Assembly: GCA_965649825.1 (NCBI GenBank)
Contig: OZ287697.1
Coordinates: 1-64,000, forward strand
DNA from: Penicillus capitatus
Lineage: Eukaryota > Plantae > Chlorophyta
Direction: 5' to 3'
Length of the DNA: 64,000 nt
Shown: one piece after another, positions 9,404 through 62,648 of the stretch
Numbering within the stretch: position 1 is the first letter of the stretch
Layout: each line of letters opens with the position of its first letter
Notes under the pieces: model-generated
Databases searched by the model: none
What the model saw: only the letters and a program-made list of their open reading frames with translations
Told to the model about the DNA's origin: nothing
Made by a program: the position numbers and the translations under genes

Positions 9404-12400
9404 CTACTCTTTAATTTCAAGATGTCCTAGCAATCCAGGAAATTTCTCATCAAATTCTAGTCTTAAAACCGCAACAAAACGATCGATAGTTTCCTTACCC
9501 CATTTACCAATTTCTTGCGAAGAAGATGTATGCATAACAAAGGAAACAGTTTTAAATTCTGTGAAGTGATTTAGCGTGAATGAGTTTTGCATAAACACGA
9601 GTAGAAGACTTCCTTTACAATCAGAAAGAGAAGATATTGCTGATGGTATAGCTTGTTCGGGTTTTATGCTTGCTAGTGCAGTTCTGGCAGCATTGCGCAC
9701 ATCCAACTGTTCATCGACGCATCCCCTTGCTAACGTCGGCAAAAATACGCCAGTGTGCTGGGGAGCCGCCGCAATAACGCGGTAGATGGACTCCATCACC
9801 GCTTGACGCACGTTCCGGTGATTGTCGCTGTACCCCTTTACTAGTGCATATGAAACCTCGCCGGCTAGCTGCGGCACAGCTGTCAAGACACGGCCGATAG
9901 CTTCAATCGCCACTGGACGCACGTGCCGATGTTCGACACTGCACCCCTTTACGAGCGTCGGAAGAAGCTCGTCGGCGTTTTGCGGCGCCGCGACGATGAG
10001 GCGGCCTATGGCCTCCGTCGCCGCTCGACGTACGCGCCAAGCTTCGACACCGCACCCCTTTTCCAGCGTCGGGAGAAGCTCTTCGGCGTACTCCGGCGCC
10101 GACTCGACGATGCGACCGATGGATTCCATCGTCTCTTGAAGTAATTTCCATTCTTCGTCGCCGGTGTGCCTCCCCAGCCCCGATATAACCACACTGCCGC
10201 ATAAATCCGGCGGCATGATCGTAATGTCTCTGCACAGCCTCGCAAACGTTGGCATAACCTCGTCGGCGTGCTGCGGCGCAGCTGCGACAGCGAGTCCGGT
10301 GGCTTCAATCGCCGCTCGGCGTGCCTCTCGGTGTTCGTCGTAGCACCTCGTCGACATCGTCGGTGTAACACCGTCGGCGTGCTGCGGCTTAGCTGCGATA
10401 ACGTTATCTATATCTATAATCGCCGATCGATGCACGTCCCATTCTTCGCTGCACCACCCTGCTAGTGTCGGCAGAATCTCGGTGACTTGCTCCGGCGCTG
10501 CCGAGGCAACTCGGTCGATAGCCTTTATCGCCGATCGACGCACGCTCCAGCCTTCATGGACGCGCCGCTCTGCCAGCGTCGGCAAAACCGCTCCGGCATG
10601 CTCCGGTGCCGAAGCGACGACACGGCCGATGGCCTCAATCGCCACGTCACACACGTCCGGGTCTTCGTCATCGCACCAGAGCACAAGCAATGGCAAAACT
10701 TCGCTGGCGTGCTTGGGCACTTGTTCTGCGAGAAAAGTTAACCTTTTGATTGACTCCTTTTTTTTGCACCAACTATCCGGCTGTTTTAGTAGTTGCAATA
10801 CGAATTGAATTATTATGTAACTCTGCTTTGAAGAGTGCCGTGCAAGCCTCTGGACATCTACGATTTTCGCCATTTCTATCCATCTTAAATCATGAACACA
10901 TGCTAGTATTCTCTTTGCTTCATCAATAGTTCCACTGAGAATTTGAGGAAATCCTTCTAAAACGTGCGGCAACTGTTGGAATTTGTCCACCACGAGTTCA
11001 CGAATTATAACATCATCGATAGTACTTTCGAGGAGTTGCCTTGCGCTTTCGGCGAGCTTGATTGCTTGTTCGTTGTTCAGAAGATTTTTCAAAACGTAGT
11101 CGTCCGACTCTTCGAGAACTGCCTCGATAACACGCATCTTCAATAAAAAGTGTTGCAGCCCAAGAACTTCAACTGGTTGTTCGTTAACAATCGAAAGCAT
11201 GTGTTGCAGTGCGTCTTTTCCACGGGCTTTTCCATATGCGTGCATCGCGAAGTACATTGTCAAGTCGTTGTTCTGATTGTATTTTTCTTCTTGGATAAAC
11301 GTTAGTAGTCGTCTTTCTTCATCCGATTCTTTTCTCTTCAGGCTTCTGGCAATAAATCTTCCAGCAAAGTACTCTTGAAAGGTGAGATGAAGAAATTGAT
11401 ATCGTTCTTCCTCCAAAACGAATAGGAGGAATCCACTTTCATTGAAAATTCTTGTTGTGTTTGCGGATGTTACATGACTTTCAACGAATCGTTCTTCGAT
11501 AAGCATTTGTCCACTTCGAAGTCCCTCAAAGGCTATCTTCTCGAGGTCTTCGAAAATAGCATCCTTGTTTGCATTCCTTGCCTCTGCCTCTAGCTTTTCT
11601 TTAAACCTCTTCCATACAAAATTTGTCACGTCGTCGTAGATCTGAAACATGCTCGCTCTCTTCTTCCGATCTTCAATAGATGTACCATGTTCTCTAGCCA
11701 GATAACAGAGAATGTGTGCCGTCACTGGGGTATGTGCGGCTTCCCACATACCTCGATCTTGTTGCAAAGAACGAATGAGTCTCGAAGCTTCATCATATTG
11801 CAGTTCTTTTCTTATGTAGTTTTTTAGCTGCTGGTCATTGAATCCAAGACACTCAAACTGGCAGTCGACTTTTCTTTGTGTCCCTTGAAGATTGTATGGT
11901 CGCGCAAGTATCAGAAGTTTGCATTTACTTTTCTCTGCCTCGGAAAGGATCTCTCTGGCATCGTCATTGGCTTCGTCCAATCCGTCAAACACCAGCAATG
12001 TGCTAGATACATCGAGATCATCGTTGATTTGAGTCTTCAACTCTTCAATTCGAGCATGGCTTCTTTTTTGTTTGAAACACAATTGCGCGACCACTTCTTC
12101 AATACCCTCTCCCCGTACAGTTTTGATTTTTGTGAGGTTTAGACGTCTTATCGGAACCACGTAAATGGCTTTGAACTCTTGCAACATCTTTCCCAGTGCC
12201 CATTTGTGTGCAATGGCTTTGCTTATGCAAGTCTTTCCCGAACCGGGATTTCCATAAAGAAGAGCTCTTCGGATTTCGCTCTTGTCAACACCCGCTTCCA
12301 GTGATCTCGGCTTAAACAAGTCTTCTATCGAAATCGGTGTTGTGACCTTTTTCTTTTGTTCGTGGTATTCTTTCAGATCATCCCTTTTTTGTATTGCGAA

Positions 12401-14118
12401 ACTTTCCACTCCCATTTCATCTCCTTCTTCGTCCTTACGCCATTCTCCTCTTCTTTCAGTTCTTATTTTTTCGATGATCTCTTCGTACACAACAACATGA
12501 TGTTCCATATCCTTCACATGCCTACGGACATCTGATTCAAACAAGGAAGGCACCTTCAACACAACCACGGTCTCCGTTTGTTTTAAACAATATCAGAGGC
12601 ACTCACTGTGGCAAAGTTATCGTGTAGGTATGTATTCTTGAGGTCTTCGATGTTAGAACGAATAGTTGACGCATGCAGATATCCAACGGTTGTGCCTGTC
12701 TTAGCGAACAGTTCGTCAAGGTAATTGTTTGTATCTTTGTGGCATGACATCTGAAGCTTCTCTTCCATCGCATTGCCATTTAGCCAAGCTTTAAAAGTCT
12801 CTTTGGCAAGTTCATCGCATGATTGTTGTATTTTTTGAAGAGCTTCGGCTATCTCATGGTTTTGTTTGTCCATTGTGTAGATAAGGTGGAAGGAGTCTAA
12901 AATCCCGGTAAGAATGTCCGCATCGTGGATCCAGTTCTCGGAGATTGCTTGATTTGTTGTCAATTCGATAAGCTTCTTCGTCGCCTCTTTGCGGCTATCT
13001 TGACAGGAGTCTCTATCATTTGCCAGCAGCCTCAGTTCTTGAACGATACCAAATCTCAAGGCTTTTTGGTTATTCGCGTTTCTCGTTTTGCGTTGTCCTT
13101 CCGTCGCCGTGTCATATGCTAGTGCAAGGAGTTCGCATTTTTTCTCTTCCTTCAGCGCACTAAGCCTTGCCGCTGTTAAAATCTGAAGCACGTCATACCA
13201 CTCCTGCTCCAATACTCCCGCATTGGCGATTGCTGTTCGAACTTTTCTGTATGCGTCCTCAGTTGATGTAAGATCGATATCACCGCCGGCCAATTTTCTG
13301 AAAAAGTGGAAGACATGCACTCCACCGTAAAGACCGGCTATGGTACGTCTTTTTGCTTGTGTGAGAGCCGACGGGGCGTCTTCGATTTCCAGACGTTCAA
13401 CCGCTTGCTGAATAAGCTGGAAATGAAAGGAGACAGGATAGTAACGAAGAGATAGCTTCATCTCCTCTCTCTTTTCTGCGACTACTCTGCGAAACCCTAT
13501 CTTCTCTTCTTCGAGAAAATAGCCACGACCGATACTTTGTAAGAGGAATAAGATTTGATGAATGCAGAGAAAGTTTGCTTCGTATTTGAAAATGTTCTGT
13601 TTTGTGAGTCTGGGTCTAGAAGACAAGCTGAGCAAGAGGTCTAGACCCAGATCCGTCAGCTGAGCTGTGTCGTTGTAGACGGCAGAATCGACCCATGTGA
13701 ATGCGCTAAACAAAGCTTTTGCAACGTTCTCGGGGAGAAATTTGTCGGGATGGATTAGGGAACCGAGGCCATCAACCAGTTTTCTCAGAATCTCTGCATC
13801 TTCTTCGGAAACATATACGACTTTGGCTAATTCTGCATACTCAAGTACCGCCTCCGGATTGAGGCAGTCAGTATTTCCTTCGCCATACTTGCGTAACCAT
13901 CCAAGAAGAACGGTTCGCTCGTTCTCATCCGTCACGGCATTGTATGCCGAGACAAGCGACTTCGTGCACATGATATTGTACTTCTTCGCGACAGCGCGAA
14001 GGAGCTTTGGTCCATTTCCCTGCTGGACGTTGAGGTCTGGTGAGTAGCGTTTGCTGCTACTTCCCGACGCGGACGGTCCTTTAACGGACTGTTGTTTGTT
14101 AGAGAATCGTGACTGCAT
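9404..14118 (-). CDS. NLR-like STAND NTPase: N-terminal helical/ARM-like domain + NACHT + C-terminal HEAT repeats (~1553 aa, 2 exons)
   Basis: The 511-aa and 1054-aa ORFs join in frame through a 53-nt GTGAGT...TTGAAG intron (12554-12606), giving HDNFAT|VPSLFES. Walker A GNPGSGKT, Walker B LLVFDGLDE, NACHT winged-helix motif FLHLTFQEYFAG, then ~9 HEAT repeats. Confidence 0.9.
9668..10717 (-). repeat. Coding tandem repeat: ~9 x 37-aa (111-bp) PBS-lyase-like HEAT repeats within the NLR-like gene
   Basis: Recurrent PxHAxxxLPTL.xxC.DE.W.VRR.AIEAIGRV.xxA pattern, visible at DNA level (e.g. CGGCGTGCTGCGGC, GCTTCAATCGCC). One repeat carries a ~20-aa insertion. Confidence 0.9.
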
Positions 14119-16334
14119 GCTCGATAGATAACCTATAAGGCAGATTCCATAACGGCCAATAGAAAGGTACTTGGAGAACGAACTTGTTGTTTTAAAGATA
14201 CGCGAAATTCGCAGAAAAGTTCTCAGCGGCGGATACGATGAGAAAGATGTTCTTGTAGACGTTCAAAATCAGATGATCGTGCTGATACAATTGATTCTCT
14301 CATCAAAGTTGTTGCTGCACAGATAGGCCTCCAGCCGCATTCATTGACTGATTTCTTTCTTTCATGTTGAATTGAGATTCATTATCGACTAAACCCTGAG
14401 TTTAACGGGATAGGAAACAGGGATTCTCGCAGTGAGTTTATACGAGATTAAAATCGTATGAGCAGAACGAGCATTAGATTCACCAGTATTTTCTAGGTGA
14501 TCCAAAAGACGGTCATTAAATTGATCTCCGCCGAAGAGAATCCAGAAGAGCAAACGATATCGAAAGACTAATCTTCAATTAACCCGTACACAGATCAGAT
14601 AGGCGAGCCAACTGAATTGCAATGTCTCCATTCTACCACGTTTAAGAATTTATGAAGCAGCTGTACTGTGTTTCAATACCGTTCAAATCCAAGTGAAGAA
14701 TCTCTAGTCTAAACTGTGCATCACAATTTTGGACGTTCTGTGACAGTTACCCTATTTGACTATCGATGGCATAGGAGATCAGTGCCCCGTCAACGATCAA
14801 ACGAGACACCACGTCATGTGTTTCGCTTGAGCTGTCTTTCTGTCTTCAGCATGTTGATCTCATGTCTCAAAGAAGACCGCCTTAAACGCGTGAACAGAAA
14901 TCCTCGAAGGATTCTTTGAAGAACGTCTGTTCTTTCCAATAAGCTTCTCTCCAGATATGATGTACATCTTCTCACAAGGAGAGATGGTGATTTTCATGAT
15001 GTGCAGTAGTTTGTTCCGAGGCTTCTTCTCGAGTGGCAGCAACTCTGGTACTTGAACATTTGGCATCGCATCGCAGCTTGGAAGGCAGGGCTTGGCGTCC
15101 AAAATTAGAGAATCATCAATCATATCGATTTCGGCAAAGTAAAGACATCCGACTTCAATCTATCACGAGAAAGGTAAGTCAGCTTAGATTTCTTCTCTAG
15201 ATTATAGAAAACACTTACATGAAGAATTCTAGATATATAGTCAGGTTAATATGGTTGAGAGGATTAGGTGTCCTTGTAGCGAGCACTCCACTTTCCTTTC
15301 CATTCGATTGGGTCTTCGAACCTTTGTTCGAGAATCCCTTCCTTCTAAAACGGTTGCGCAGATTTGTATTCTCATGGAAGACATAGATAATCCACAGATG
15401 ACTGAAGCCCTTCAAGTCTGTGTCGGATACATGCATGTGGTATATATATCCTTGCAAAACACGAGTCTAGCCTGCGCTTCGGGTACCAGGAGCGCCTGTC
15501 GTGGCATCCTGTTCTTGTTCCAATTCTTCATTGCGCGACCCTTGGAGCATCTGATTTTGTCGCCGAAACAAGAGACGATGCATCCTGTCTACGCGAATTC
15601 TCTCGACCTTTAGTCGTAGTTGCCTAGAAAGTCAAGCGTTGCCGCAACGCCACCTCCAGAATGTGCTGTCGAGAATTACGAGCGCATGAGTAAGCGAGTA
15701 ATACCCCGGCTTTGATCCCCCTTTTGTTCCCGTCGCCCAAGAAATGTGAAGACAATGGAGAGGCTGTTCCTTCCTTTGGTTGAATCTGTATTCGCGAGGC
15801 TGTCCGAGTCTCGTGGTTCGACCTTGTTCCATGTTCACTACGCATCGCTCGCTAACCGAGACATAGTGATCTTATAGGTCGCACACTGGAAAGCCAAACG
15901 GTCGATTCCGATGCAAGAATAGGAGTCTGTTTGAATGACTTCAACGATAGGCGGCAGTGCGTCCTCGGTGTTCTGTGCATCGCTGAAGTGCTTCGCGGAG
16001 AACGTCTGTTGACAATCTTCAATTTGAGAAAATGGAACGAAGGTAGAGAGACGCGGTCGACGTTACCTCTTGAAGTCTTTAATGTTCTGGATGAGGCAGA
16101 TTGAGCAATGTGCACGATGATCACTAACAATTTAAAGTTGATCTTTGAAGATAGGATCACACTTGCACAAAACCCGATGCAAATCATCTCAGACCTTTGT
16201 CATTTGGGAGTTGACGGGGATCCACTCAAACCAATGACGCGACCATTCCAGAACTGGAGGAGTGGAAAGTGAATGCAGCGTCAATAAGTGAAGCTATCTA
16301 CAGAGTAGAATACGAGCTGACCGCGGTGAAAGTT

Positions 16335-27919: not shown

Positions 27920-30580
27920 ATGCCGGTAGTCAAGAATCCGAAGCGAAGAGGATACATCCACAGGACCTCATCGACTTCAGAGTTTGCTTCACACGTTGTC
28001 ACACGGTCACCTCTGGAAACGAAGGAGTTCGGAAATCGAATTGCAAACGCTCCATCCAGAGAAGAGCCTCGCTTCTGTTATCGTACGATTTTCTATTCGT
28101 ATTGTGTGCGATCTGTGAACGGTGACTGTTTGTCGCAGAATGAAGTGTTAGAGGAAGAAGAACATCTCCAGCTGCTTAAAAAGACACCACCGTTTCGAAT
28201 TGATCCCGAAGGGACATTCAAGGCAAAGTGGGATGTCTTCATGCTTTTCTTAGTCTACTACGTCAGTCTGGTCACTCCACTGAATCTGGCATTCTTTTCC
28301 AACGAGTCGACGCATCGAGACTCCCTCATCGAATACCAGGTAGCCACGTTCTGTCTTTCTTCTCTTCTCAGCTCTGAAGGAAATGATGACACATGTCATG
28401 TAGCACGAATTCTCTCAAAGATGTCAGAGCAATGATGAGGCCCACGGTGCCATCACGAGTTTTGCAGAGATCGAGTACATACCTGATTCAAAGCTCGCCT
28501 CCTGAAATGGATGCTTACACAGATTTATCATCTTCCTCCAACAACCACCCACGGCCTACAGAGTGCTTGATATTGCTGTGGACGTTCTCTTCTGGATTGA
28601 TTTGATCCTGACATTTTTCGTCGGGTTCAAGCCGAATCGGAGCCTCGATACCGAATACGATCTGAAGAAGATCGCCAATCGATACCTTCGGCGCTGGTTC
28701 CTCCTGGATTTTATTGCCGTCCTGCCCATCGATCGCATTGTCGATGCCACTGTATCAAGTCTGAACTGAGCCATTGGAGAATCATGCAATTCCTTCCTTG
28801 TGTTATGTCTGGACAGAAGGAAGCGTTCAAGTGCAGGTTGTCAAATTGACGCGTCTTCTCAGACTCTCTCGCCTGTTGAAGAGATTCGGGGAACTCATGG
28901 CGTCAAAATCATTAAGAATTGTTTATTTGCTTATCCTGTACACCACGATCGCACATTGGATCGGATGTGCCTTTTTCTTCTCGGTAAGAAATGCGTGTCT
29001 CGTCTTTCTCAGATGACAGACGAGGCATTCCTGCTCAGGGCAGATGGCAGGTGGAGAATCTTCAGAATGGAGGGGCCAATGCTTTTACAGGCAATCCATG
29101 GCTGATGGATCAGTGCCTGCAATTCGCCAACTTCCGCACGCAGTACTGCATGTCTCTTTACTGGGCTTTTACGACAATGACCACGGTGGGGTATGGAGAT
29201 GTTTTGCCGACAACAAACATTGACAGGTGAGGCTTTCTTCAATCTCTGTTGAGACCTTTGTTCCGTCCGTCTTGAATACGTTTCGTGCGCTTTCCTATTC
29301 TGAACGAGTTTGTGGATGCAGAAACATCGCCTGTATTGTCATGATCGTGGGAGGCATCATTCAAGCGATCATTTTTGGAAATGTTGCCATTCTTATACAA
29401 ACGATGGGAGAAGCCAGGAAAAGACTGGAGAACAAGCTCGACGTCGTACAAGAATTCCTCACCTTCCACGGACTTCCAGAAAATCTCACGCAAAAAGCCA
29501 TGGATGCCATCGAGTATTCCTGGAACTATTCTCAGGTATGCAAAAAGAAAGAGATCGATAGATCTCCCATTGCCAATGACGCATTTGAAGGGAATGGACG
29601 ATCGTTCCATTTTGGCGGACTTCCCAAAGGCCTTGCAAACAGATCTCATGATCCAGACGCAATCTCACATTGCACCCGTTTTCAAAGAATTGAGTGAGGG
29701 ATTTCGACGCGCCATCATATCGCACTTTCATCTGAAGATATTCGTTCCAGACGAGTGCATTATTCATGTCATTCTCCGACTTGCATGCAGGACTCTTCGT
29801 TCTGATGGGACATTTGTTCAGGCGGGAGACACTGGTGCAGAAATGTATATCATCAGAGATGGCGAATGTGTTGTCCTCTCGCCCAATGAGAGAACGACAC
29901 TGGCTCTACTGAGATCTGGGAGCTTCTTTGGTGATATCGATTTGATTCTGCGGTCACGAAGAACGGCAACTGTCAAGACACGAACATACTGTACGATGTT
30001 TGTTCTCAAGAGGTCGATCAGCTCATGCTTCACTCACAAAGACATACACAAGAAACAAACTGTCACCTCATACAGGGAGGATCTTGAGAATATCTTGGAA
30101 GAATTCCCAGGACACAAGACAACGCTCATTGAGAGCACAAAGAGAAGAAGAGACATGCAACAACAGAAGAATGCTTCATTCACTGAGTTCTTGAAGTGCT
30201 TGTATCTTCCTCTAAAATTCTGGTTGGACTGGTTGCAGATGCCGGAGACAGCAAGCATCCACAAACAACGACGAATCAGAATTGCTTATCTGTGCATCTC
30301 AGCGCCATCCATCCTCATCTTCTCACCTTCCCTCAGTACTCTTTGGCCAACTGCTAGTCGGCGTACTCAGTCTTCTGGTATCGTGCAGGAAACAGAAAGG
30401 CACGAGCCTATGCTTGACAATGCAGATCGACTCAATGAGCTGTCCGCCAAAACGATGGAACAGCCACCGAATGTGGCTCCTTTCCATCATCTGGAACCAC
30501 TTGCACACACTCTAAGTCACCCAGTCTTCAGTCCGGCACAAGATTTCTGCTCGTCAGACAGTTTCGATAGTGCCGATTAA
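27920..30580 (+). CDS. Voltage-gated K+ channel with cyclic-nucleotide-binding domain (KCNH/Shaker-CNBD type)
   Basis: S1 KWDVFMLFLVYY; S3 YLRRWFLLDFIAVLP; S4 KLTRLLRLSRL; pore SLYWAFTTMTTVGYGD; CNBD AGDTGAEMYIIRDG…GSFFGDIDLILRSRRTATVK. C-terminal exon boundaries are uncertain. Confidence 0.92.
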
Positions 30581-44755: not shown

Positions 44756-46084
44756 ATGACCTCTGTTGCGAGAAACACCATGTCTGCTCGATACCAAGTC
44801 ACTTGGTCTTCCCACGCAAGATCTCCAACGCGCTCGCCGAGTTTTTCGACGCCGTTTGTCTCTCGCATTCGCCAAGCGGCGAGTAGTCATTCCAGGATCA
44901 CTAAATCGCTGTCGAAGAGAGACCCTCGTGATCGCGCATCTGTTCGCGCATCGCTACGATCAGAAACTGAAATCATCAGCGCGCCATTGACATCAGGTTT
45001 CCTTTCCGTTTCAGTTCACTGAGTCTTGACCTGTCCGATGTTCTTCAGAATCCCCCAAGCAGGGAGATGCTCCATGCGGAAATGGCCTCGTTTCGAAGAG
45101 CGATCTTCTTTCATTGGAGAATGAGCTTTCACAGGGAGAGTCCATCAAAGCGCTTGCCAAATTCAACAATGCTCTTCGTCAACTCGATACATCGAACTGG
45201 GGTACACATCGGAACACAGAAGCCGAGATCTCAGTCAAACTGTGCGCCCTATAGAAGCAAAGCTCAAGCCTGTCTTCAAAGAATGGTGTTTCAATTTGGA
45301 ATCCTTCAATCCTGCATTTGCTGCCGTTCTTCTCCAGGCATTGCCAGCGAGATCATAAAGATCACATCAGATCATGTATGTTGTGTTTAGGTTCAACTGA
45401 GTATTGGCAAGAGTGATTACTATCGTCGAGATGACTGCTTGAGGTGTCTTATACAGCCATTGGCCGGAGAATATGGAATGCACAATAATGAACCTCAAGG
45501 TAAGCAAGGAAGTTAAGTGGGATGTTCTGAGTGTTCTCTCAGGGAAGACACATCGACAACTGTTCAAGGAATTCTTCGAATCGCTCTTTCCCGATTCTTC
45601 TCTAGACGTGCTGCTGGATTCAGAGCCTCTTCATGGAAAGACGCTTTTCGAGAAAATGATCCATGATATCCAATCTCATGGTACTTTCCTGTTGTCCTTG
45701 TGCTCTGAAGAAAGGTTTCGCACAGGCAATGATCCGATTGAGAGAGCGAGCTATGCGTTGGGATACAACCTGGCTATCGAGTATTTGGCAGATTATGAGA
45801 AGCGATGGATGCTACAATCCTTTCGACAGCTTTCGTCTGGGGCGATTCAAAGAGACATCGCGTGGCTCTTTCTAGAAATCCACGCTGAAGGCAGGATCAT
45901 TCTATGAGCGCCCGTCATACACATCTTTGACTGTTTAGATGAGAAAGAGCATGCGGCGATTGGACACGAAGCCGTTCTCAGCTTCGTCCCCTCGTCACAT
46001 CTAGCATTGCTGCAGAAGGCAATGCAGGACCATGATCGAGACTTTGCTGTTTTCTACAATCACCTTGCCTCGATGCTGAAGTAA
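44756..46084 (+). CDS. Plastid-targeted heme-oxygenase-like diiron enzyme (CADD/PqqC/TenA-like superfamily)
   Basis: Ser/Arg/Thr-rich N-terminus; LAGEYG…KTHRQLFKEF, ALGYNLAIEYL and FLEIHAEDEKEH (H-x3-E-x2-H). Two GC-AG introns (45338-45390, 45891-45938) are needed to keep the frame. Confidence 0.72.
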
Positions 46085-46366: not shown

Positions 46367-47562
46367 TCATCTCAAAATAGACTTGTCGAAATCATCAGGT
46401 ATCAGCTCGGATATCCATTGTTTCAACTTATGTATGTGCTCTGCTCCGGCATGTGCACCTCTCAGGTCATAAAGAGTGCACAACGTTCGAATGAGGGGTT
46501 CCTAGATAACAAAGATATCGCTCGATTTGGGATCACGGCGATTATTTGTGGACCTACCTGTATGTGCTTGAACGGCTTAGCGTTAAGATTGCTTTGCACA
46601 GTATGGATTGCTGCTTGGTTGTTGCACCGGAGCAGTTCACAGATGCTCTTGTTATTCGCAGCCACTGCATGGATGTCCGAATCACTCGAGACCTTGTCAA
46701 AGTGGCTAATGGCCCCTGCAGTGATGCATTTATCGTCTGTATGACGACACATCTGAAAACAATCGCTAACCATTGTAGTCTGCCTCGGAATAGGAACAGA
46801 GTCCAGCAATCGTACTGGACAGATCTGGATTCGTCAGTTTCTTCCTTGTTTCCCTTGCATGCTCGATATCCCCAAGCATCAACATAATACAGCAGACAGC
46901 GAACCATGCCTACAATGACATCATCCGATTTCTTTCGTTTGGAAAGATTTCGATATACCCTTTGGTTTTCGGCATCCATGGTCAGCAGTTCATTCAACCA
47001 CTTGAGTGTTTCTATGTAGTCCTTCATCTGACTGTAAATATTGACCACACACCAGATCACTATCTCACGTTTTCTTTTATCCTTTCCCACAGTCTCGTAT
47101 AAAAGAGACAGGCGATCCATTGCCATTCTTGGATTGTCCATGAAGAATGGAAGCAATGCATGGAGCAAACGAACCCCGAACGAGCAGGCTGAACACATAT
47201 ACTTGCATCTGTGCTTCTACTTCCTTCGATAGCTTACTTGAAATCGAAGCCTCCAGTTTTTCGAACTCCTCTGCTGCTTTCTTGTACTTGCCCATTTTGA
47301 AAGTAGCCAACGTCAGATAGGTCTTCTTTGCGACATGGTCGTCAAGACCACCGTGCAGAATCTCGTCTTTCGCCTCCAGTATGGCATTCCAGCAACCCTA
47401 GACGACGACGGCGTCTTCGTTGACAGTGATTCGGGCACTCTGTCGCTTTACACGAAGAGCAAGGGCCTGTAGTCCTGGCAAATCGAAGCGAACGTCTGTC
47501 GTGGGTCGCAACAGAACGGCCGACCATTCTTCTTCAAAATGAACTTTTTGTAGAGGATGCAT
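46367..47562 (-). CDS. TRAPPC12: Trafficking protein particle complex subunit 12 (TPR protein)
   Basis: GLQALALRGCWNAILE, FGVRLLHALLP…MDRLSLL, AANNKSIC, TLCTLYDL…DDFD. Confidence 0.8.
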
Positions 47563-47586
47563 GCGTCGTCTGTCTCTGACCGTCGA

Positions 47587-50500
47587 TTACACATGAGGTA
47601 TACTCTCGTGTACGTCATCATGTTGCCCGAGTTCTTTCATCACATTGAAATAGGGAGCGAATTCGGGCACAGATGAAAAGTCCTTGTAGATCTCCTCCCA
47701 CAAGTGAGAACGTTTCAATTGAAAACTGACGACGACAGGCATGTGCTGTAGCAACAGTGCCAAAGCCAGTGACCACGTGTCACATCTGTGCGCAAGACAT
47801 GGTGTGAATGGGGAAGCGCAAGAGCTAAATGGATGTACCTGGCGTGCTGACAGATTTCAAGGAGTAGTTCTGCATCGCTGTGCAACTGTTCCGACGACAG
47901 CTGTATGTGCACTGTCATCATTGCCGAATGGATACTGTCTTTTGTCACGGTTTCCTTCAACACATCTTTGTCTGTGCAATAACCCTAGAAACAGCGACAG
48001 TTAAGTATCCCCAGAGCGTTTTCATTAACAGCATACCATTAATGCTGGCAGGCCACCGCCCAGTGACGAGACAGACTGTGCAAGTGCCAGCAATGGCTGT
48101 AGTTGGCTAAACTCTAGCAGACACCATACATGTTCGCGCACGACCTGGACAGAATCGATCTCGAGCAGTTAAGAGTGGGTGGGCACAGCACCTTTGCCGC
48201 TTCCAGACTGGCTCCAGACAACACAGGCTGCTGATGATCTGGAGAGCTTTCTTGCCCTTTGTCATCCGATCCTCCCCACATCCATGAAAACCATGACGAT
48301 AAGCTCCCCTCTGTTGTAGCAGCTGGCGAAGTATTTGTGACGGTTCCTTTCAAAAAGATACGATCGAAATCGGATTGTGTCACGGCATAGCGCAAGAGTT
48401 CTGCCACCAACGCATACTCTCCACCTGACAGAGCGACTTGAAGCACTTGCAGTGCCAGTGCTCTCGCCAGAACACTCCCTTCCATCTTATCAATCACGAC
48501 CAACAGACAAGCAGCCGAATGTGACGCCCCTAAACAAAGAGCATCCGGATAATCAATATACATCATGCAAGAAGTACCAACCTTGATTCAGTAGAGTATC
48601 CAGCACTTCACTGGGACGACCAACAACGTCAAACAGCAATGGCCACAGCTGAGCATCCGTCTTCCTGGCAACACTCACGACCACGTCTGGATACTGAGAG
48701 AAGTCTTTGACAAGTGCTGTTGCCAAAGACAGGAGAGATCTGTCTGGTTTTGAAGAGCCCTAAGCATAGAGCGCACCATTGCAATGAAAGTAAGTCGATC
48801 GATTGCGCAATTACTGTGGAAGGATGATGTCTCTTGTCTTTCTTTGATGACTCTGTTGCTGCCTGAAACTCCAATGCAGTAAAGAGGAGCCATTCCAGAG
48901 ATTTTGAGAAATGCAGTCCGACCTTCTGGTGCTTTCTCGCCAACAGTTTCGCCTCCTTCATGACAAACATCTGTGAAAACTACGACTTCGCATGGTGCAT
49001 CACCTGCACAGCTCCTCTTTGAAGCAATCGACGAAGCAGGCATGGCAACACAGGTTGTGTGTCTGGCATTGGAGAGAAGCATGGAAGCGACAATGAAGGC
49101 GATGCTGATGGATCTGAATTGCATGCTGGTGGACGAACGAGGCGTTGTGAGACTCCAATGATGGCTGCATCTGCCAAAGAGATGCCGATTGGGTACACCT
49201 GCGAAGAACAAAACCTTGATCACAAGATCCTTTCTTGTCTTCCACATTCGTAGCACGCACCTCCCGATCAAATTCCAGTTCAGGATCTAACTGTCCTGTG
49301 ATGGCGTGGCCCGTGGACGGAATGCGTCTTGGCGATAAAGGTTCTGACAAAGATGAAGGAAACCAGAGTTCCATGCCACGCACACCGTATGCCCACCATG
49401 GCATTTCAACCATGTTGACTGCCTGTCGATTGCGTCCAGCACACGGCAGTTCTGAATGTCCCATCGAAAGCGATGGAAGAATATAAGAAACGGCCGTGGT
49501 TGAATTAGCTGGAACTTTTGTGGCATCGCTCAGCCAGAAGCATTCCACCTCGCTTGCCAAGAACTGTTCAACGCCTTTCTCCATGTCCAATAGTGTCATG
49601 ACACCGCCCCAACGCAACACGACACACTGGTCTGGAACCTTGAAACCCATCCAGAAACAGCATATGAGTTGGCAGAAGAAGAACATGTCACGACTGAAAT
49701 GCACCTCACCTTTGAAGAATCGTCAGATGTCTTCGTGAGCGATACATTGAAGAGGGGACGTTGCAAACTCAGAATCGACAGTTCTCGCAGAGGAAGCAAG
49801 GTTGCTGTGGCCCTTGTTGATTTGGTAAGTTCTCCTTCGATCTGACATTCGTAGAGAGCGATATCCAGTGGCTCTGAGGCAACTAAGACGTAGCGGTCTA
49901 AACAGTCCAATGCCACTGGAGTGTGCTGCAACTTGTGGCGGAGCAAAAGTGATGCAAAGTCCAGATGATAGTGAGGGAAAAGGAGCAAGTGGGATTTTCC
50001 ATCTTCTGCGTTCGAGCAAACGACGATGATCTTGCAAAGCCAGTTGATAAGGGACGCAGAAATAGACTTCTCCTGGCTCACATCTCCAAAGAGCTTCCAT
50101 TTCTGTGTTCGTCGACTGTAAACGGCCAACCCATGTCGACCTGCCATGGCAATATCGGAACCGTCTGACGAAACGGCGGCCACTCTGAAAGGCCAGTTTT
50201 CAGAAATGTATTCCTGAGGTGCTTGTATGTGCCGGACAGTCAGTTGACTCTCCGAGAACCGGGAATCCAGGAGACCAGCATCGACACCATTCTCTCCATC
50301 CTTCCCTCTCTGAAACTCTGAGATAAGAAGCAGGCGATCGTCTCCTTGGAGAACGTGCACTTCTTCCAATGCTGCCTCAGATGGCTCCCCTTGTTTTTCA
50401 GATGGATGAGAAACTCGGTGGCGTCCGGACAAGGAACGCACAAATCTCAATTCCCAAAACTCTTTTGCATGGCCTGTCTGGCCGACCCACAATCGATATC

Positions 50501-52218
50501 CATCCACTCCCCATGCCAGAACAGATACTCCCCATTCCAACGTGGGAGTGTCGATGTCAAACGAGCCAGAGAGATTGGCTCTGTGTCCTGGTGTCTCAGA
50601 CTAGAAAGAAATCATAGAAGTGACATAGCGTGTGATATACTTGTGGGATGTGCCTACCCTCGATTCCTCGTTCGTTCTTCCTGAGAACCCTATCTTATCC
50701 GTCGTTCGAGAATTGATAGCCGTTTTCGTTGAACTGAGAGCTGTCTTTGGTTTCAATGGGGTCTGCGGCAATGAACACATCAAGCGACACCCAGAGGGTG
50801 TCCATACAACGATTCCTCGTTGCCGAAATCCCACAGCAAATGCCGTGCAATCCCCACTCCAACATATGTCCTGAACGGGACCTGTTCGCCAAACCACGTC
50901 TTGCGTGCGTTGAGCCATGTATTGTGCTGCCTGTAATTTCTGGCCCATGTCCCCAATCGGAGAGATTGAGCCTTCTGACTGGACTCGGAACAGGAGTGCT
51001 GTTTTCCTCGGACGACTGCCCAAAGATACCAAATGTCTCTGTCAACCTAAGGACAGCTGAGATATCCATCAGGCAGTCAATCGTGGTTTGCCTGAAGAGA
51101 ATGACCGTTCCATCAGTGCACCCAACAGCAACCATGTTTGCACAGTCTCCGATCCGAGCACAAGTCACTTTGTAGCTCTCTGCTCCTGAAGTGAAAACGC
51201 AAGGATGACAGCATTGAGCTTGTTTATTTCGAGAAAGGAGTCTACCTTCATTGATCCACTGATTTACGTGCAAGCCTTTCATTGAAGCATCTGCCGTGTG
51301 GCAGAGGCCGGTCGAACCATCTTCGAACGTCACTGCCAATCTTTCAACGCGACTGGAATAATCCATATCAACAATTGCTCCTTTCGAGATCTTGTTGCCT
51401 GAAAAGTAGACCGTCGGATCACTCCTCAGAGCGTGGTACTTCTCTCTGATCACTCGATGAGCATTCAGGACTGGCCAGAATGAAAGGGCTTCCGGAATCC
51501 TCAGCAGAATGCGGAGTTCTCTCCATACTCAGCAGATCCAGGCATCCATCAAACCAATTGGGAATCTCTGTAGCGAGTATTCATTGAGAGGCAAGATATG
51601 CGAGCAGCTTTGCCTTCATCGTGAAATTCATACACCTCTTCCGGTTGCAAATTCTCATTCATCTTTGGCCAGTCATAGATTTGAAGCATCCCATCTCCCG
51701 TTCCAATCATCACGGATGAACCCATTGTCACCAAACAGTTGCCGATCTAGCCAAGAATCGAATCGATCAGCGCAAGTCATTGTTGATAGCACGTGACGTA
51801 CAGAACTGCCAAACAGTTGCACAGTGGCATGCACGGTCATCCTGACAGTGGTGGCATCGCGCAGAGGACCGGAGACTGACGGTCTGTTGACCAGTTTCTT
51901 CCCCGTTGAGGTGACAGAATATAGAAGTATCCATCCCTTTGCCGTCAAGCAGATTGCACTGGAGAGTTGTGCATTCCATTCTGCCGCAACCTGGGGACCT
52001 AATCTTAGCAGCTCTTTAGGTGGAAGGAACATCTGTCCAAGTTTAAAGGGATTCTCTGTTCCTGCCCACAACTGCACGGCGCGTTTTGAGGCCAAGAAAG
52101 TGGTGGGGAATGAGAAGAGGGGTGAAGAGGGATGTGTGAGGCAGGAAACGATTTCATCGTGTCCGTATTTGGCTGGGAAGGCGATGTAAGATTTCGGCCA
52201 ACCACATGGAAACAGCAT
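47587..52218 (-). CDS. RIC1: RAB6A-GEF complex partner RIC1
   Basis: N-terminus MLFPCGWP; WD-like region; MWVQLYGDDHWTV-type WPFRVAAVSSDGSDIAMAGRHGLAVY…KWKLFGDVSQE segment; VVVSVARKTDAQLWPLLF; C-terminus DAELLLEIC…WSLALALLL. Confidence 0.9.
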
Positions 52219-52401
52219 CTCGACGCTGAACAAACGCAACGTCTGCGCGTCGTACGTTGTACGTCACAAATGCCCAACTATCTCTGTGCAGTCCTGTTTG
52301 CTTTACTAGCACTCTCTTGCACGTCGTGTCCCCTTGAGAAGCGTTGCTTCGTTACACGACGCCTTCGTTAACGAGATTTCGTCATTGTTACCAATACTGA
52401 A

Positions 52402-54348: not shown

Positions 54349-54453
54349 TGCTCTAGAAAAAATATCGCAAGCTGAACAAGGTCACATCTGAACCACGAAG
54401 TGGTGACGGATGTTGCAGTAACCGATATAGATTAAAGTGACACGTGTCGTGCA

Positions 54454-56039
54454 TCACTCACGAGGCATTTTCATACTGGTTTGAATTTCTCTGAGAATTT
54501 CCGAAAAGTCAGGACGTGATTCCGGATCGGAAGCAGTACATCTTCGGTACAGAGACTTAAGATGGGTGTCCATTTCCTGTGGAGCGGGCATCGCATACTC
54601 TTCACCTTTCAGGACTTTCTCATAAATCTATCAGAGGACCGTTTAGTGGTGTGAGAAAGAGTGATGCGTCACCTGTCTAAAATGCGTGTGTTCGTACGGT
54701 TGTTCACGGGTACACATTTCCCACAACACGACCCCGAAGGAGTACACGTCAGACTTCGAACTCAGTTTACTGTTCGTGAAAAACTCTGGACTTGAGTACT
54801 GCCATGTGCCAATACCGACGGTCATTGTTGCGTTCTTCAAATAGTTCCTTGCCAGTCCGAAATCAGCAAGTTTAACGACATCCCTCACATCTGTCCGAGT
54901 AACAAGGAGGTTTCCAGGTTTGAGGTCACGATGTATCATTCTCCGCGTGTGAAGATGCAGTAGACTACAGGCGATATCGCACAACATCTCTTTCACCTAT
55001 GTCGATGCTAGGAATGTGGAGGAGTGACAGACAGCACGGGAGATCACCTTCATGAGTGGAAGAGGATATTCTGGTTCATGAATCAAGTCGAAAAGGGAAC
55101 CAAGATTGCAATACTCCAACACCAAGCAGGTTCCAACGACGCCATACATCTTGATGATGTTGTCATGTTGAGGAATCTTCTGAAAAATCGCGCACTCTCG
55201 ACGGAACTCTTTCTCAAAATTGCTCTCTTTCGAATACACGATGAATTTCAGCACGACTTCATCGCCGCGATACCATCCTCTATACACCTAGTAGACACCT
55301 AATGGCTGCCTGCCTTCTTCACGCTATGTCGCACCTGAGAAGATGCCCCATGTCCAATGAGTCGACGACTACAGAGGATCTCTGACGGATCGAGGATCGC
55401 ACAGCCACACTCCACTGGCTTTGTCGTCTCGCATTCGATCTCATACAGTTCCGAAAGGAGAACGAATTCGTCGTCTCCGGCCGAGAGCTCGTGGCTCGTG
55501 TGTCGGTCTTGTGAATTCGCCGTCAATGGATGTGCTCTTAGTGTCATAGGCGCGGTCACTGGCGTGAAGAGGCGAACATCCTTCACGTTTAGATCTCTCA
55601 CGCGAACCGTTTCGGGAGCCTCTTTAGGTGAATAGTGTGCTGGAATGTCCGTTGCGCTGTCGGCAATGCAACGACGGCCTGACGAATTGGACGTCTCTGT
55701 CTCTTCACGATTCGCATACGGTCCCTTTTCTGGTGAAAACTGCGTCGAATCCCACGAAATCTCGATTCTCGTTTCGTTCATTCTGTCATTCGACAAGTCT
55801 GGCGGAGAGGATGATGCCTTTCTTTGTCTTTGCGGCGGTGCCAGAATCGTCTCTGCGATTCCGATGGTCGAGAGGCCCTTCACGCAAGGAGGTCGACAAG
55901 GGAGAAGCAGAGCGACGCTCACATATGCAGAGAGGCTCTCCTGTGGAGCAGCATTCTCAGCGTTGGCCGTCTCTTGTTTGAGCGAAAGCTTTCTTAATGG
56001 TTGCCACAGATTTCGACAGACACACCATAGAAACGACAT
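54454..56039 (-). CDS. Tyrosine-kinase-like (Raf/MAP3K-type) Ser/Thr protein kinase (start approximate)
   Basis: IGHGASSQVYRG, VVLK, HRDLKPGN, DFGLAR, GTWQYSSPE, DVYSFGVVLWEM, SRPDFSEI. Confidence 0.92.
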
Positions 56040-56220
56040 GCACGCCCACAGTCTTCGCTTGGATGACACTTCTCTCTAAATCTCCTAGCACTTTAGTCTT
56101 TCCGTGATTTTTCGCTGGTCTGTTCACAAATGCGTCAAAAAGACTTCGCTGCATGCAGCGTCGTTTTGCTTTTGGAAGATGGTTCGTCATTTCAATGATT
56201 TCTCGCGTCTTCCAGTCGAA

Positions 56221-57224
56221 ATGGGTTTCTCTTTGCACGAATTCGTATCTTGCCGCTGCCACCCGCAGCTCCAAGCGCAGCTAACGGCACTCGACCCATT
56301 CGATGCAGATTCTTATACGTGCTTGATCACCGGACCGCCAAAAAGGTCAGCTACTTTACGCATAGCGACAACACAAGTACCATAGACTCCTCCTGTCCAG
56401 CGGAAAGACGTCACTTCTCATGCACTTTGCTTTGAGTGAAGCGGCATCCGGGAGAAACTCGGTGTTCGTCTGTCAGCGAGACAAGATTGAAAAAGACCTT
56501 CCGGTACTTCCTGAAGGCATGGACCCACATCATAACCTGCTAAATGCTGTCCACATGAAGTGTGCCTCTCTGCTGTTATGTGCGTGTGGAACCATCTCTT
56601 CTCTCTGTTGTTTCAGGTACGTATCAAATGCAAAAGAGCTTGTGAGTTTCGCCATCGATGGGCGCTTCCTGACGGACAACATTGACAGTATCGTGGTGGA
56701 TGACCTTGCTCTTCTGTTACCACCAGAGAGGCAAGAGCATTCCTTTTGCCATTTCAGACATATCAGCCGACGGAGCACGCTTTGCAGAGAGAAGAGGTTT
56801 GAGAACAGAAGTGATATGTTCAGAATGCTCGCTTCCCTATATGAGCTATGCAAAACGCTCAGGTACTTTGTGTTTTTTGTACCAAGAAGATATTGGCCAC
56901 TCCAAAAATAGGGAGAAGGGCAAGGCTTCTCGGCTGGTTGTTACTGGGGCGGATGTGCAGACAGGATTCATCGATCGGTTTGTTTACAGCAAATGGCTCC
57001 ATGCGCGTCTTTCTATATCAGGTGATCTTTCCTGAAAGCGCTAGAGACTCAATGTATGTCTTCACAACACAGGCAATCGACCAATTTTTCAGATCACTCC
57101 ATTCGAAGAAGATCAGACGATAAAGAGGGAGATGGGCACTCCCAGAGTATCATTTGTTTTTGCGTGCGATGTCTTTAAAGCATCATCGATCACACAGAGC
57201 CATTCATATCGTGGATTAAGATAG
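56221..57224 (+). CDS. SWSAP1: RecA-fold ATPase resembling SWSAP1 (Shu-complex RAD51 paralog)
   Basis: CLITGPPKSGKTSLLMHFALSEAASGRNSVFVCQR…HMKYVSNAKELVSF…IVVDDL. Confidence 0.65.
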
Positions 57225-58596: not shown

Positions 58597-59033
58597 TTAG
58601 GAGATACCTAGCAACTCAACATCAAACAATAGCGTCGCATTTGGAGGAATCACTCCTAGGCACACGAACCATCATGGTATATCTCTTCTTCTTACGAAGC
58701 AGCGACGGAAAGGCATTACCTCCAGCACCTGCCGATCCATATCCATAGTCTGGTGTAATTTCGAGAGAGGCTCTTTCACCAAGCGTCATTTGCGCCACAC
58801 CCTCATCCCATCCACGGATGACCTCCAGAATGAAGATGTGTAGAAGGGATCAATGTATAAGAGAATACCTCGCCGACACCAAGTCTAAAACGAAAGGGAC
58901 TGTTTCTATCGCGAGAGGAGTCGAATTTCTCTCCATTTGTGAGTGTTCCGGTGTAATGCACCGTCACTGTCTGTCCACGGCTCGGACGCGTGACGCCGTC
59001 GCCCGGGTTTATGGTATTCTTGGTGACTCCCAT
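58597..59033 (-). CDS. FKBP12: FK506-binding protein 12 (peptidyl-prolyl isomerase)
   Basis: MGVTK…VTVHYTGTL…FDSSRDR…[10 protein letters not shown]…[16 protein letters not shown]; two introns. Confidence 0.97.
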
Positions 59034-60359: not shown

Positions 60360-62571
60360 TTATTGAGCAGGTGCCCTTTCCCTTAAATACTCCAATAATG
60401 GTCCCGTCCCCTTGTTGAGGATAGATCTACGAATGGTCTTCAATATGTTTCCTAAACACAAGCACGCTCCATGTGTGAGACGATTGTTCCACAGGAGACA
60501 GCAAGCACCTTCCAATTTGAGCGTTTTTAAGACGGGGTCCATGAATCCAAGTCGTAGGGGAAGGGAAGAAATGCTGTTGTTACTGATATCGAGGTATTCC
60601 AGGTTTTCCAGTCTGGTAATGTCTTCCGGCAGGATTTCAATGCCGTTCTGGCTGATGTCCACATAACAGAGAGATGGCACTTCCAGCAACTCGACTGGAA
60701 ACTCCCGTAGCTGCGTCATGGACAGAGACACGGATTTGATGCATTTCAATGAGACAAGGCATCCTTTTGGCATAGAAGATGCCGAGAGAACACCTAGAAC
60801 ACAGTACTGTCGAGTGGCAACGAAAAAAAAACATATGATCTGCTGTTGGACCATTGAGGTTGATCTCGCTCAATGTCTCGGCACAAGAGACGAAAGCATT
60901 CTCTGGAATGGGCATCTGTTTGTTTCTGGACAGATCGAGTTCGACAAGACTGGATAAACAGTCTGGCTGCGACGGCAACGGCCAATTCTGTAATTGGCAG
61001 CACTGCATGAGGAGTGTCTTCAAACGAATGGCATCACACATTGGACGACCATCAAACTCAACCAACTGCAGCACACATCACACTTTTATACTACAAGGAA
61101 CTACAGGTGCCTTGGAGATACATACAGGGTTTTCGTTGAGATCGAGTTTGTTGACATATCCAATGTGGATCCAGATATCGGAAGGGACGTCTTTAAGGTT
61201 CATTCTCGACAGATTCAATTCGCCAGGGGTCTTGTTCGTCACATAGCTCTGTAGCAGATTCTTGATCTGTGTGAAGGGATCTCCTGTGATCATGACACGA
61301 CCACTACTGAAAGGAACAGCCTCGTTCACGTCCTCTTCGACTGGCAGCTTCTTTCTGAGAGACTCGAGCAGTCGACCAATGGGACCCATTGTCAGATCTC
61401 TTCGGATGGTGCGCAAAGGATTTCCATCCAGAGGCAGACGTCTGAGCGTCGTAATCAGTCCCACTTCACCAGGCAGTCCACTCAGATTGTTATTGCTGAG
61501 ATCTAGCGTCTGTAGCTGCATTTCTCGGCAAGAAGGGCCTGGGAAAGATTTCATTTCATTGGTGTTGAGATCCAGGATCACCAAACAACGCAATGCCCCT
61601 GTTGATTGCACAGAATCTGTGTGGCCCTTGCTGACAGACGACATCCTTACCAATGGAATCCGTTAGCGTTTGGATCTTGTTGTAGCCCAAGTAAAGCTCT
61701 AAGAGGCTTTTGCATCCAGAGATTTCATCTGGAACAGAAGTCAGATGATTGTGCCTGTATCCAACACAGATGTTGAAGACGCTGCGCTCGAATGACGAGA
61801 GACCTGACTCTGAGAATCTTTAGATTCGTCAAGTGCTGCAGTTCCTTCGGCAATTCTGTCAACTGATTGTTGTCGAGATTCAATTCCGTCAGGGCGTCCG
61901 TTCCACGAAAGATGCCACCGGGGAACCTCTCTACCGACACCACATCCACAACTCAGGCACGGTCGAATCCGCCAACGCCGGTTCTCACCGATTCTATTCT
62001 TTTCGAGGTTGAGAAGGGAGAGGGAATAGGCATTCTTCAATGCCATTGGCAGCGTTTTCAATGCATTGTCCGATGCCTCCAGTTTGGTCAGTTGGTATGC
62101 CATGGAGCCAAATTCCAAAGGGAGTTCCGTGAGTTGATTGGATGCACAGGACAGACTGACAAGCGTACTCAATCGACTCATCTCGTCCGGCAGTTCCGTA
62201 AATTTATTGTGTGAGATATCAATGGAACGCAGTTCACTGATGGTAAACAAATCGAGTGGCAGATGTCTCAACTGATTGTGACTGACATCAATCAGTTTCA
62301 GTTCATAGAGCACTCCCAAGTCTTCAGGCAAGGATTCGAATTCATTATGAGACAAAACTAGCTGAACCAACTCCACTGTCTATAACCATCAACCGTGTGT
62401 TTGCGTGAAGATAGAGGGACAGGTGAGGCGGTGTACATCGAAGAAATTGTCGCGTTGCGCACGGTTGTAGGCCTCAGACGGTAGAGATGTCAGTCCCTCT
62501 CCGCGCAGATTGAGTGTTCCCGATTTTTTGGACGTCTCGACTTTGCGCATGAACGACACCGGCAGTGCCAT
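60360..62571 (-). CDS. LRRC40: Leucine-rich repeat protein LRRC40-like
   Basis: SKKSGTLNLRGEGLTSLP, many LxxLxLxxN repeats, and two GNPLRTIRR/GNILKTIRR…LLEYLR caps. Confidence 0.8.
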
Positions 62572-62648
62572 GGAGTCCGTTTCCGATACGTTCTCGAAAA
62601 GGCAAGAAGAACGCAGGAACGAACGTACACACGCAAGTCACTTCTCAA

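Follow-up and report, generated by a model that had tools for sequence, protein, structure and literature searches.

Reinitiation after termination is used by viral systems such as calicivirus, with its termination upstream ribosome-binding site (TURBS), and influenza B M1/BM2, and by a few cellular dicistronic genes such as Drosophila stoned A/B. In green algae, nuclear polycistronic mRNAs were described in Chlamydomonas and Chromochloris (Gallaher et al., 2021, PMC7896298), in agreement with what the initial annotation of the DNA studied here had stated. The upstream open reading frames (ORF1) of algal bicistronic loci have medians of 291-357 nucleotides (nt), and ORF2 is translated by leaky scanning (PMC11291117). 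The median inter-ORF gap published for Chlamydomonas is 183 nt and that for Auxenochlorella 40 nt, with stop and start overlapping at some loci (PMC11291117), and the ORFs of a pair share a frame as often as chance predicts, in 1/3 of cases (PMC7896298). Overlapping transcripts are also a documented consequence of compaction in other eukaryotes, as Williams et al. (2005, PMC1182411) are cited in PMC6009652. Here we describe RIC1 and TRAPPC12, two membrane-traffic genes arranged head to tail on the minus strand of a 64,000-nt stretch of the Penicillus capitatus genome (contig OZ287697.1 of assembly GCA_965649825.1, positions 1 to 64,000; hereafter the window) and separated by only 24 nt. Judged with about an even chance, the two may be separate and separately translated genes with overlapping transcription units.

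On the minus strand, the codons CCT CAT GTG at the end of RIC1 are followed by its stop codon TAA (47589-47587), the spacer (47586-47563), and the start codon of TRAPPC12 (47562-47560), which continues with CAT CCT CTA CAA. Both genes are read in one common frame in the window, for which the chance probability is by itself 1/3. These junction letters, the TAA with its 24-nt gap, and the common frame had all been quoted in the initial annotation and were reproduced exactly. The observation is therefore real, and the interpretation given to it, an operon-like pair that might also be read through as a fusion, was partly supported.

The RIC1 model was obtained by protein-guided spliced alignment to the homologue P0002. 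Both domains of RIC1, a subunit of the Rab6 GEF, were recognized in Pfam, namely PF25440 (second beta-propeller, E = 7e-46) and PF07064 (C-terminal alpha-solenoid, E = 1e-25), and the 247 homologues found carry the names RIC1 or RAB6A-GEF partner. The protein is 53% identical to P0002, and 52 and 45% identical to the closest named sequences, those of Caulerpa lentillifera and Bryopsis, respectively, which places the source alga near Bryopsidales. Two raw ORFs from the window have entries on contig ctg340516_41x_l of the metagenome assembly ENA ERZ25074695. In the alignment, the C-termini of the RIC1 model and of nine other RIC1 sequences end no more than a few residues apart, so the TAA is the natural stop of the gene.

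The family of the downstream gene was named by an exhaustive HMMER search queried with the Bryopsis protein BSKO_06358 (P0001), which yielded 330 relatives. P0001 matches the "Trafficking protein particle complex subunit 12" (TRAPPC12) of Cymbomonas with E = 1.4e-37 and the protein of the same name of Nematostella with E = 5e-14. The window protein is 39% identical to P0001, which likewise starts with MHPLQ. By homology, the downstream gene is a TRAPPC12 (TTC15) orthologue and encodes a putative subunit of the TRAPPIII complex. Thus both gene names proposed earlier held, that of RIC1 through Pfam domains and that of TRAPPC12 through HMMER matches to named orthologues. TRAPPC12 matched no dedicated Pfam family, and the PDB search gave no chain of this protein; the family profile matches tetratricopeptide repeat (TPR) chains there, and searches of the PDB and NCBIfam for the TRAPPC12 name gave generic TPR matches only. 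Several chlorophyte orthologues begin with M-x-HPL, and the genes of three relatives of the window (L006, L008, and L013) all begin with MHPLQ. Since this N-terminus is kept, ATG 47562 is the natural start of TRAPPC12. The five introns of the gene, read from the sequence and checked by translation, measure 54, 49, 49, 55, and 56 nt. Two of the five are missing in the relative L009. This contig had been considered as transcript evidence and was rejected, as one intron is retained and it represents genomic DNA of an intron-poorer relative.

Genomic contigs of the relatives were located via exon-sized fragments from the HMMER search, and the tandem pair was found in three of them. In L013 (European Nucleotide Archive, ENA, ERZ26696514), which is 86% identical to the window over 14.5 kb, the 24-nt spacer is identical. 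In L008 (ENA ERZ27276715), the RIC1 stop TGA at 1750 and the TRAPPC12 ATG at 1782 enclose a 29-nt spacer, and the two ORFs are out of frame. In L006/L007 (Logan SRR33785045/46), the RIC1 TAA lies at 4639 and the TRAPPC12 ATG at 4711; the spacer of 69 nt is in frame and contains an in-frame TAA. The adjacency was not found at six other RIC1 or TRAPPC12 loci, those of Bryopsis, Micractinium, and Apatococcus and three Bryopsidales-like RIC1 loci, L002 (an intron-free, cDNA-like RIC1 contig of a Caulerpa-like alga), L010, and L011. In L010 and L011, the gene after RIC1 is a convergent RPAB4 gene. No further junctions were found in Joint Genome Institute (JGI) metagenome scans. Conservation of the adjacency in other chlorophytes, which had been proposed as a check, therefore holds for three relatives with spacers of 24-69 nt and fails for the six other loci.

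The kinase gene, a TM-like gene, RIC1, TRAPPC12, and gene X (the convergent neighbor of TRAPPC12) are all syntenic between the window and L013. The adjacency is thus part of a collinear block within one Bryopsidales-related clade, and because the neighboring genes are syntenic too, it is not by itself evidence of a selected functional pair. The tiny spacer, as judged by sequence comparison, exceeds chance, since it recurs in three other genomes and is identical at 24 of 24 positions in L013, where the identity of introns and other spacers reaches only about 72-78%. As a separate observation, the cDNA-like contig L002 runs 2.8 kb beyond the RIC1 stop (3964-6743) and there crosses a trypsin-like protease gene, which is unspliced, in antisense orientation. 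In this relative, transcription may thus read through over long distances, or convergent transcripts may have been merged.

Nucleotide constraint at the junction was measured on the 14.5-kb alignment of the window with L013, as identity by sequence class (Table 1). The stretch from -123 to +8 of the TRAPPC12 ATG is the longest with at most one mismatch in the 14.5 kb and includes the longest perfect run of 83 nt. A coding divergence of 9% would predict about 12 mismatches over 131 nt, compared to the one seen (P ~0.01 by our own estimate, allowing for the windows tested). Past +8, the third codon positions of TRAPPC12 vary normally, so the constraint stops at the start codon. In the alignment of C-termini, conservation of the protein among distant relatives is lowest in the RIC1 tail encoded here. 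A single mismatch in 131 nt, in spite of this, points to an element upstream of the TRAPPC12 AUG that is constrained at the nucleotide level, which is a new result. In comparisons with the distant L006 and L008, the last RIC1 exon showed no clear rise in synonymous constraint (0.57 vs. ~0.45 and 0.50 vs. ~0.48, respectively, with small n).

Table 1. Features of the RIC1-TRAPPC12 junction and its surroundings in the window, with nucleotide identity to L013.
Feature	Position	Strand	Description	Identity to L013
RIC1 gene	47587..52218	-	ATG 52218; ~14 exons (~13 introns, mostly 47-62 nt); 1234 aa; TAA 47589-47587	
Last RIC1 exon	47587..47785	-	variable C-terminal tail (...NVMKELGQHDDVHESIPHV*)	95.5%, top of all RIC1 exons
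RIC1 codon positions 1 / 2 / 3				95.5 / 97.6 / 81.9%
RIC1-TRAPPC12 spacer	47563..47586	-	24-nt inter-ORF spacer TCGACGGTCAGAGACAGACGACGC, from TCG to CGC; no ATG inside	100% (24/24)
TRAPPC12 orthologue	46367..47562	-	310 aa; exons 47562-47452, 47397-47238, 47188-46959, 46909-46771, 46715-46558, 46501-46367	
TRAPPC12 codon positions 1 / 2 / 3				94.9 / 97.1 / 76.8%
Introns				mostly 64-83%
Conserved block	47555..47685	-	last ~99 nt of RIC1 coding sequence, spacer, and first 8 nt of TRAPPC12	1 mismatch/131 nt
TGACGTAC (ACGT-core motif)	47610..47617	-	-55 to -48 of the TRAPPC12 ATG	
Overlapping +1-frame ORF	47448..47621	-	57 aa; spans RIC1 end, spacer, and TRAPPC12 exon 1; from the ORF list	
Candidate cryptic intron	47544..47603	-	60-nt GT..AG (GTATAC...AAAAAG), by enumeration; splicing would remove stop and ATG and fuse the ORFs in frame	
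Divergent spacer RIC1-MsrB	52219..52401	.	183 nt, RIC1 ATG to MsrB (SelR) ATG 52402(+); ~65 nt beside RIC1 conserved, holding ACGT motifs	72%
Convergent spacer TRAPPC12-X				74%
Gene X	45081..46084	+	convergent; no Pfam match; tblastx and alignment; syntenic in L006, L008, L009, and L013	
Tandem spacer, kinase to next ORF	54349..54453	-	105 nt, kinase stop (54454) to ATG (54348) of next ORF; palindromic ACACGTGT (G-box-like) inside	93%
Protein kinase	54454-56280	-		
FKBP12-type isomerase	58597-59033	-		
Leucine-rich-repeat proteins	60363-62637	-		
Cyclic-nucleotide-binding-domain protein	29345-30577	+		
NACHT/HEAT gene	9407-14262	-	NACHT P-loop domain, then many HEAT repeats (1062-aa ORF and upstream 559-aa ORF)	
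Tandem satellite	1-7593		329-bp unit, 23.1 copies, 94% matches, ~66% GC, strong GC skew	

Read from the DNA, an internal start site and overlapping RNAs would most likely account for this junction, with a possible role of an ACGT-core motif. In this lineage, the intergenic space has shrunk to 24-69 nt. Because this is too small for a 3' untranslated region (UTR), a promoter, and a 5' UTR, the transcription units would have to overlap. TRAPPC12 would be transcribed from its own start site, located in the ~125 nt with which the RIC1 coding sequence ends, its promoter and leader being embedded in the RIC1 3' end, and RIC1 transcripts would cross this promoter and end inside or beyond TRAPPC12. 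A constraint that ends at the TRAPPC12 start codon is what would be expected of a promoter and leader overlying coding sequence, and the same block is predicted by a reinitiation element too. An embedded promoter and leader would also fit the general compaction of the region and the comparably conserved second tandem spacer between the kinase and the next ORF.

The candidate motif TGACGTAC lies within the conserved block. In the 56 kb of the window outside the satellite, the minus strand carries just two copies of this 8-mer, and the other copy (52259-52266) is at -48 to -41 of the RIC1 ATG, where about 65 nt with further ACGT cores are well conserved compared with L013. ACGT cores are also found upstream of TRAPPC12 in relatives, GACGTAC at about -49 in L008 and ACGTAA at about -75 in L006. 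The pentamer UGGGA occurs in the window, L013, and L008 and not in L006, and the three-species alignment revealed no motif common to all spacers. TGTAA, which overlaps the RIC1 stop and is present in two copies in the spacer of L006, was considered as a general poly(A) signal and rejected, being absent after the TRAPPC12 stop in four species and from the L008 spacer.

Several points weigh against separate genes with an embedded promoter. Three upstream ATGs (47621, 47618, and 47594) are no more than 60 nt away from the TRAPPC12 ATG, so that either the start site is at most ~31 nt upstream or the mRNA carries upstream AUGs. The conserved block is visible only in the close pair of the window and L013. 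Moreover, a near-perfect 131 nt surpasses the typical promoter conservation in this genome, where the RIC1-MsrB spacer is 72% conserved overall and the ~65 nt beside the RIC1 ATG about 92%. The RIC1-side copy of TGACGTAC reads TGACGCGC in L013, and the case for the ACGT-core motif at TRAPPC12 was made post hoc, so that its role is only weakly suggested. Finally, the starts of both downstream genes that served as yardsticks for tandem spacing (the coiled-coil gene and the ORF after the kinase) are without homology support. The three upstream ATGs belong to the 57-aa +1-frame ORF of Table 1 and are all kept in L013. This ORF is probably not a gene; on a longer TRAPPC12 leader it would serve as an upstream ORF.

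Alternatively, the RIC1 promoter may drive one bicistronic mRNA with a common poly(A) site, on which TRAPPC12 would be translated by termination at the RIC1 UAA and reinitiation at the first AUG 24-69 nt on. The conserved ~100 nt before the stop would then assist, as the viral TURBS element does. We consider this, the main rival explanation, rather unlikely, with evidence on both sides. The spacers of the four genomes (24, 24, 29, and 69 nt) are all without an AUG, although chance would leave spacers of 146 nt in total free of AUGs in roughly 10% of cases. Together with the ~100 nt before it, the spacer is the best conserved part of the 14.5 kb, with the constraint ending at the restart codon. 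Nuclear polycistronic mRNAs with comparably short gaps do exist in green algae, and the AUGs upstream of TRAPPC12 make a long independent leader awkward. On the other hand, RIC1 is not the short, AUG-poor ORF1 with a weak start context that leaky scanning requires; it has 3,702 nt, 82 AUGs, and a G (purine) at -3 of its own AUG, which rule this mechanism out. On a bicistronic RNA, translation of TRAPPC12 would therefore depend on termination-reinitiation at the end of a very long ORF, and the efficiency of reinitiation drops steeply with ORF1 length (discussion in PMC11291117). In addition, the RNA structure at the junction is nothing unusual (z = -0.21), the spacers share no motif, the UGGGA is missing in L006, and the pair is not adjacent at the six other loci. 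The more specific proposal of a bicistronic mRNA conserved in the one Bryopsidales-related clade, with reinitiation 24-69 nt past a 1,234-codon ORF aided by the conserved ~100 nt before the stop, appears more doubtful still.

The common frame of the ORFs in the window and L013 also raises the idea of a RIC1-TRAPPC12 fusion protein. It would arise by stop readthrough across the in-frame spacer, as the initial annotation had suggested, or by splicing of a small alternative intron that includes both the stop and the ATG. Cryptic GT..AG introns that are of normal size and would keep the frame do occur, of 60 nt in the window and of 53 and 62 nt in L008, whereas the candidates in L006 measure 90 and 129 nt, outside its intron range. 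Checked by hand on the sequence, no micro-intron (17-23 nt) within the 24-nt spacer preserves the frame. The frame itself is not kept in relatives, the L008 spacer being out of frame and the L006 spacer holding its in-frame TAA. The stop is UAA followed by U, an efficient terminator context, and the initiator Met with the MHPLQ N-terminus is conserved across chlorophytes. Neither a leaky stop nor a conserved in-frame downstream ORF, the marks of programmed readthrough, was found, and no protein of fusion length occurs among the 120 RIC1 homologues listed, of which the longest has 1409 aa. A fusion is thus very improbable. It is scarcely credible that two monocistronic mRNAs are released from a polycistronic precursor, for instance through the coupling of cleavage and polyadenylation to spliced-leader trans-splicing that operates in nematode operons. 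In the window, AG dinucleotides do precede the ATG closely (GTCAG, ACAG), and in L008 an AAG at about -7 follows a pyrimidine tract, but these putative acceptors are conserved neither in position nor in sequence, and a 24-nt spacer is almost too small for a poly(A) signal and an acceptor. To our knowledge, spliced-leader trans-splicing is not known in Chlorophyta.

The reading as two genes with overlapping transcription units can be set against the packing of their surroundings. The stop codons of TRAPPC12 and the convergent gene X are 282 nt apart in the window and only about 65-140 nt apart in relatives (5851-5921 in L006, 2973-3060 in L008, and 558-700 in L009), so that their 3' UTRs there must overlap or be extremely short. 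Of two other tandem pairs, the FKBP12 gene and a coiled-coil gene are ~144 nt apart, and the kinase and the ORF after it ~105 nt. In both, the downstream start was read by eye, as codon bias is too weak for a codon-usage gene finder to set boundaries in the window. The 24 nt between RIC1 and TRAPPC12 are the extreme of a generally tight packing, the other spacers in the window being 105-282 nt. Spacers shorter than the combined UTRs and promoter, as expected in a compact genome, are thus found both in the window (24-282 nt) and between convergent genes of relatives (65-140 nt).

The window is eukaryotic, with short ORFs interrupted by very small introns. These introns are uniformly tiny, at 47-62 nt in the window (46367-52218), ~38-48 nt in L006, and ~51-56 nt in L008. 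The 105-nt spacer behind the kinase is, in its 93% identity to L013, far above introns and other spacers; it may be a dense tandem junction or unrecognized coding sequence. The satellite at the start of the window adjoins gene-dense sequence of 47% GC and could be subtelomeric or centromeric. The large NACHT/HEAT gene has an NLR-like architecture that is unusual for a green alga. No Rfam match and no tRNA were found in the window.

If the transcription units of RIC1 and TRAPPC12 only overlap, the locus would illustrate clearly how a promoter and leader can lie within the coding end of an upstream gene, in a free-living or holobiont-associated green alga whose genome is packed about as tightly as those of picoplankton algae. 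It would also be a warning to annotators, as UTR-based gene models will merge such pairs. A bicistronic mRNA, if real, would extend algal polycistrony to Ulvophyceae and would require reinitiation after a very long ORF, which current green-algal models exclude. Clade-wide reinitiation would give viral termination-reinitiation a cellular counterpart and add a second mechanism of algal polycistrony to leaky scanning. Either way, the 131-nt ultra-conserved junction is a concrete testable element.

The junction shares features with each of the described systems. Like viral and cellular termination-reinitiation systems, it combines a long ORF1, a stop and a restart AUG close together with no AUG between them, and a conserved ~100 nt upstream. 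It differs in that this upstream block is conserved only in the close pair, in the lack of a clade-wide motif complementary to 18S rRNA (L006 being without UGGGA) and of a structure signal, and in that one shared RNA is hypothetical here. With green-algal bicistronic loci (PMC7896298; PMC11291117) it shares two complete same-strand ORFs, each with its own stop and start, a very short gap (24 nt here and 24, 29, and 69 nt in relatives), a chlorophyte host, and, as far as three relatives go, a pair kept among related species. Those loci have a short ORF1 with few AUGs in weak contexts, whereas RIC1 is long, rich in AUGs, and starts in a good context; the pair described here is confined to one Bryopsidales-related clade and is known from DNA alone. 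Unlike the compacted genomes discussed by Williams et al. (PMC1182411, as cited in PMC6009652), the present one is neither a nucleomorph nor that of a parasite but a free nuclear green-algal genome of 47% GC, with many ~50-nt introns and a contig of at least 1.46 Mb, and the overlap of transcripts is here deduced from the sequence. The likeness to them lies in spacers too short for regulatory signals, so that UTRs and promoters are expected within neighboring genes, and, as far as the account in PMC6009652 goes, multigene or overlapping transcripts are expected as a by-product.

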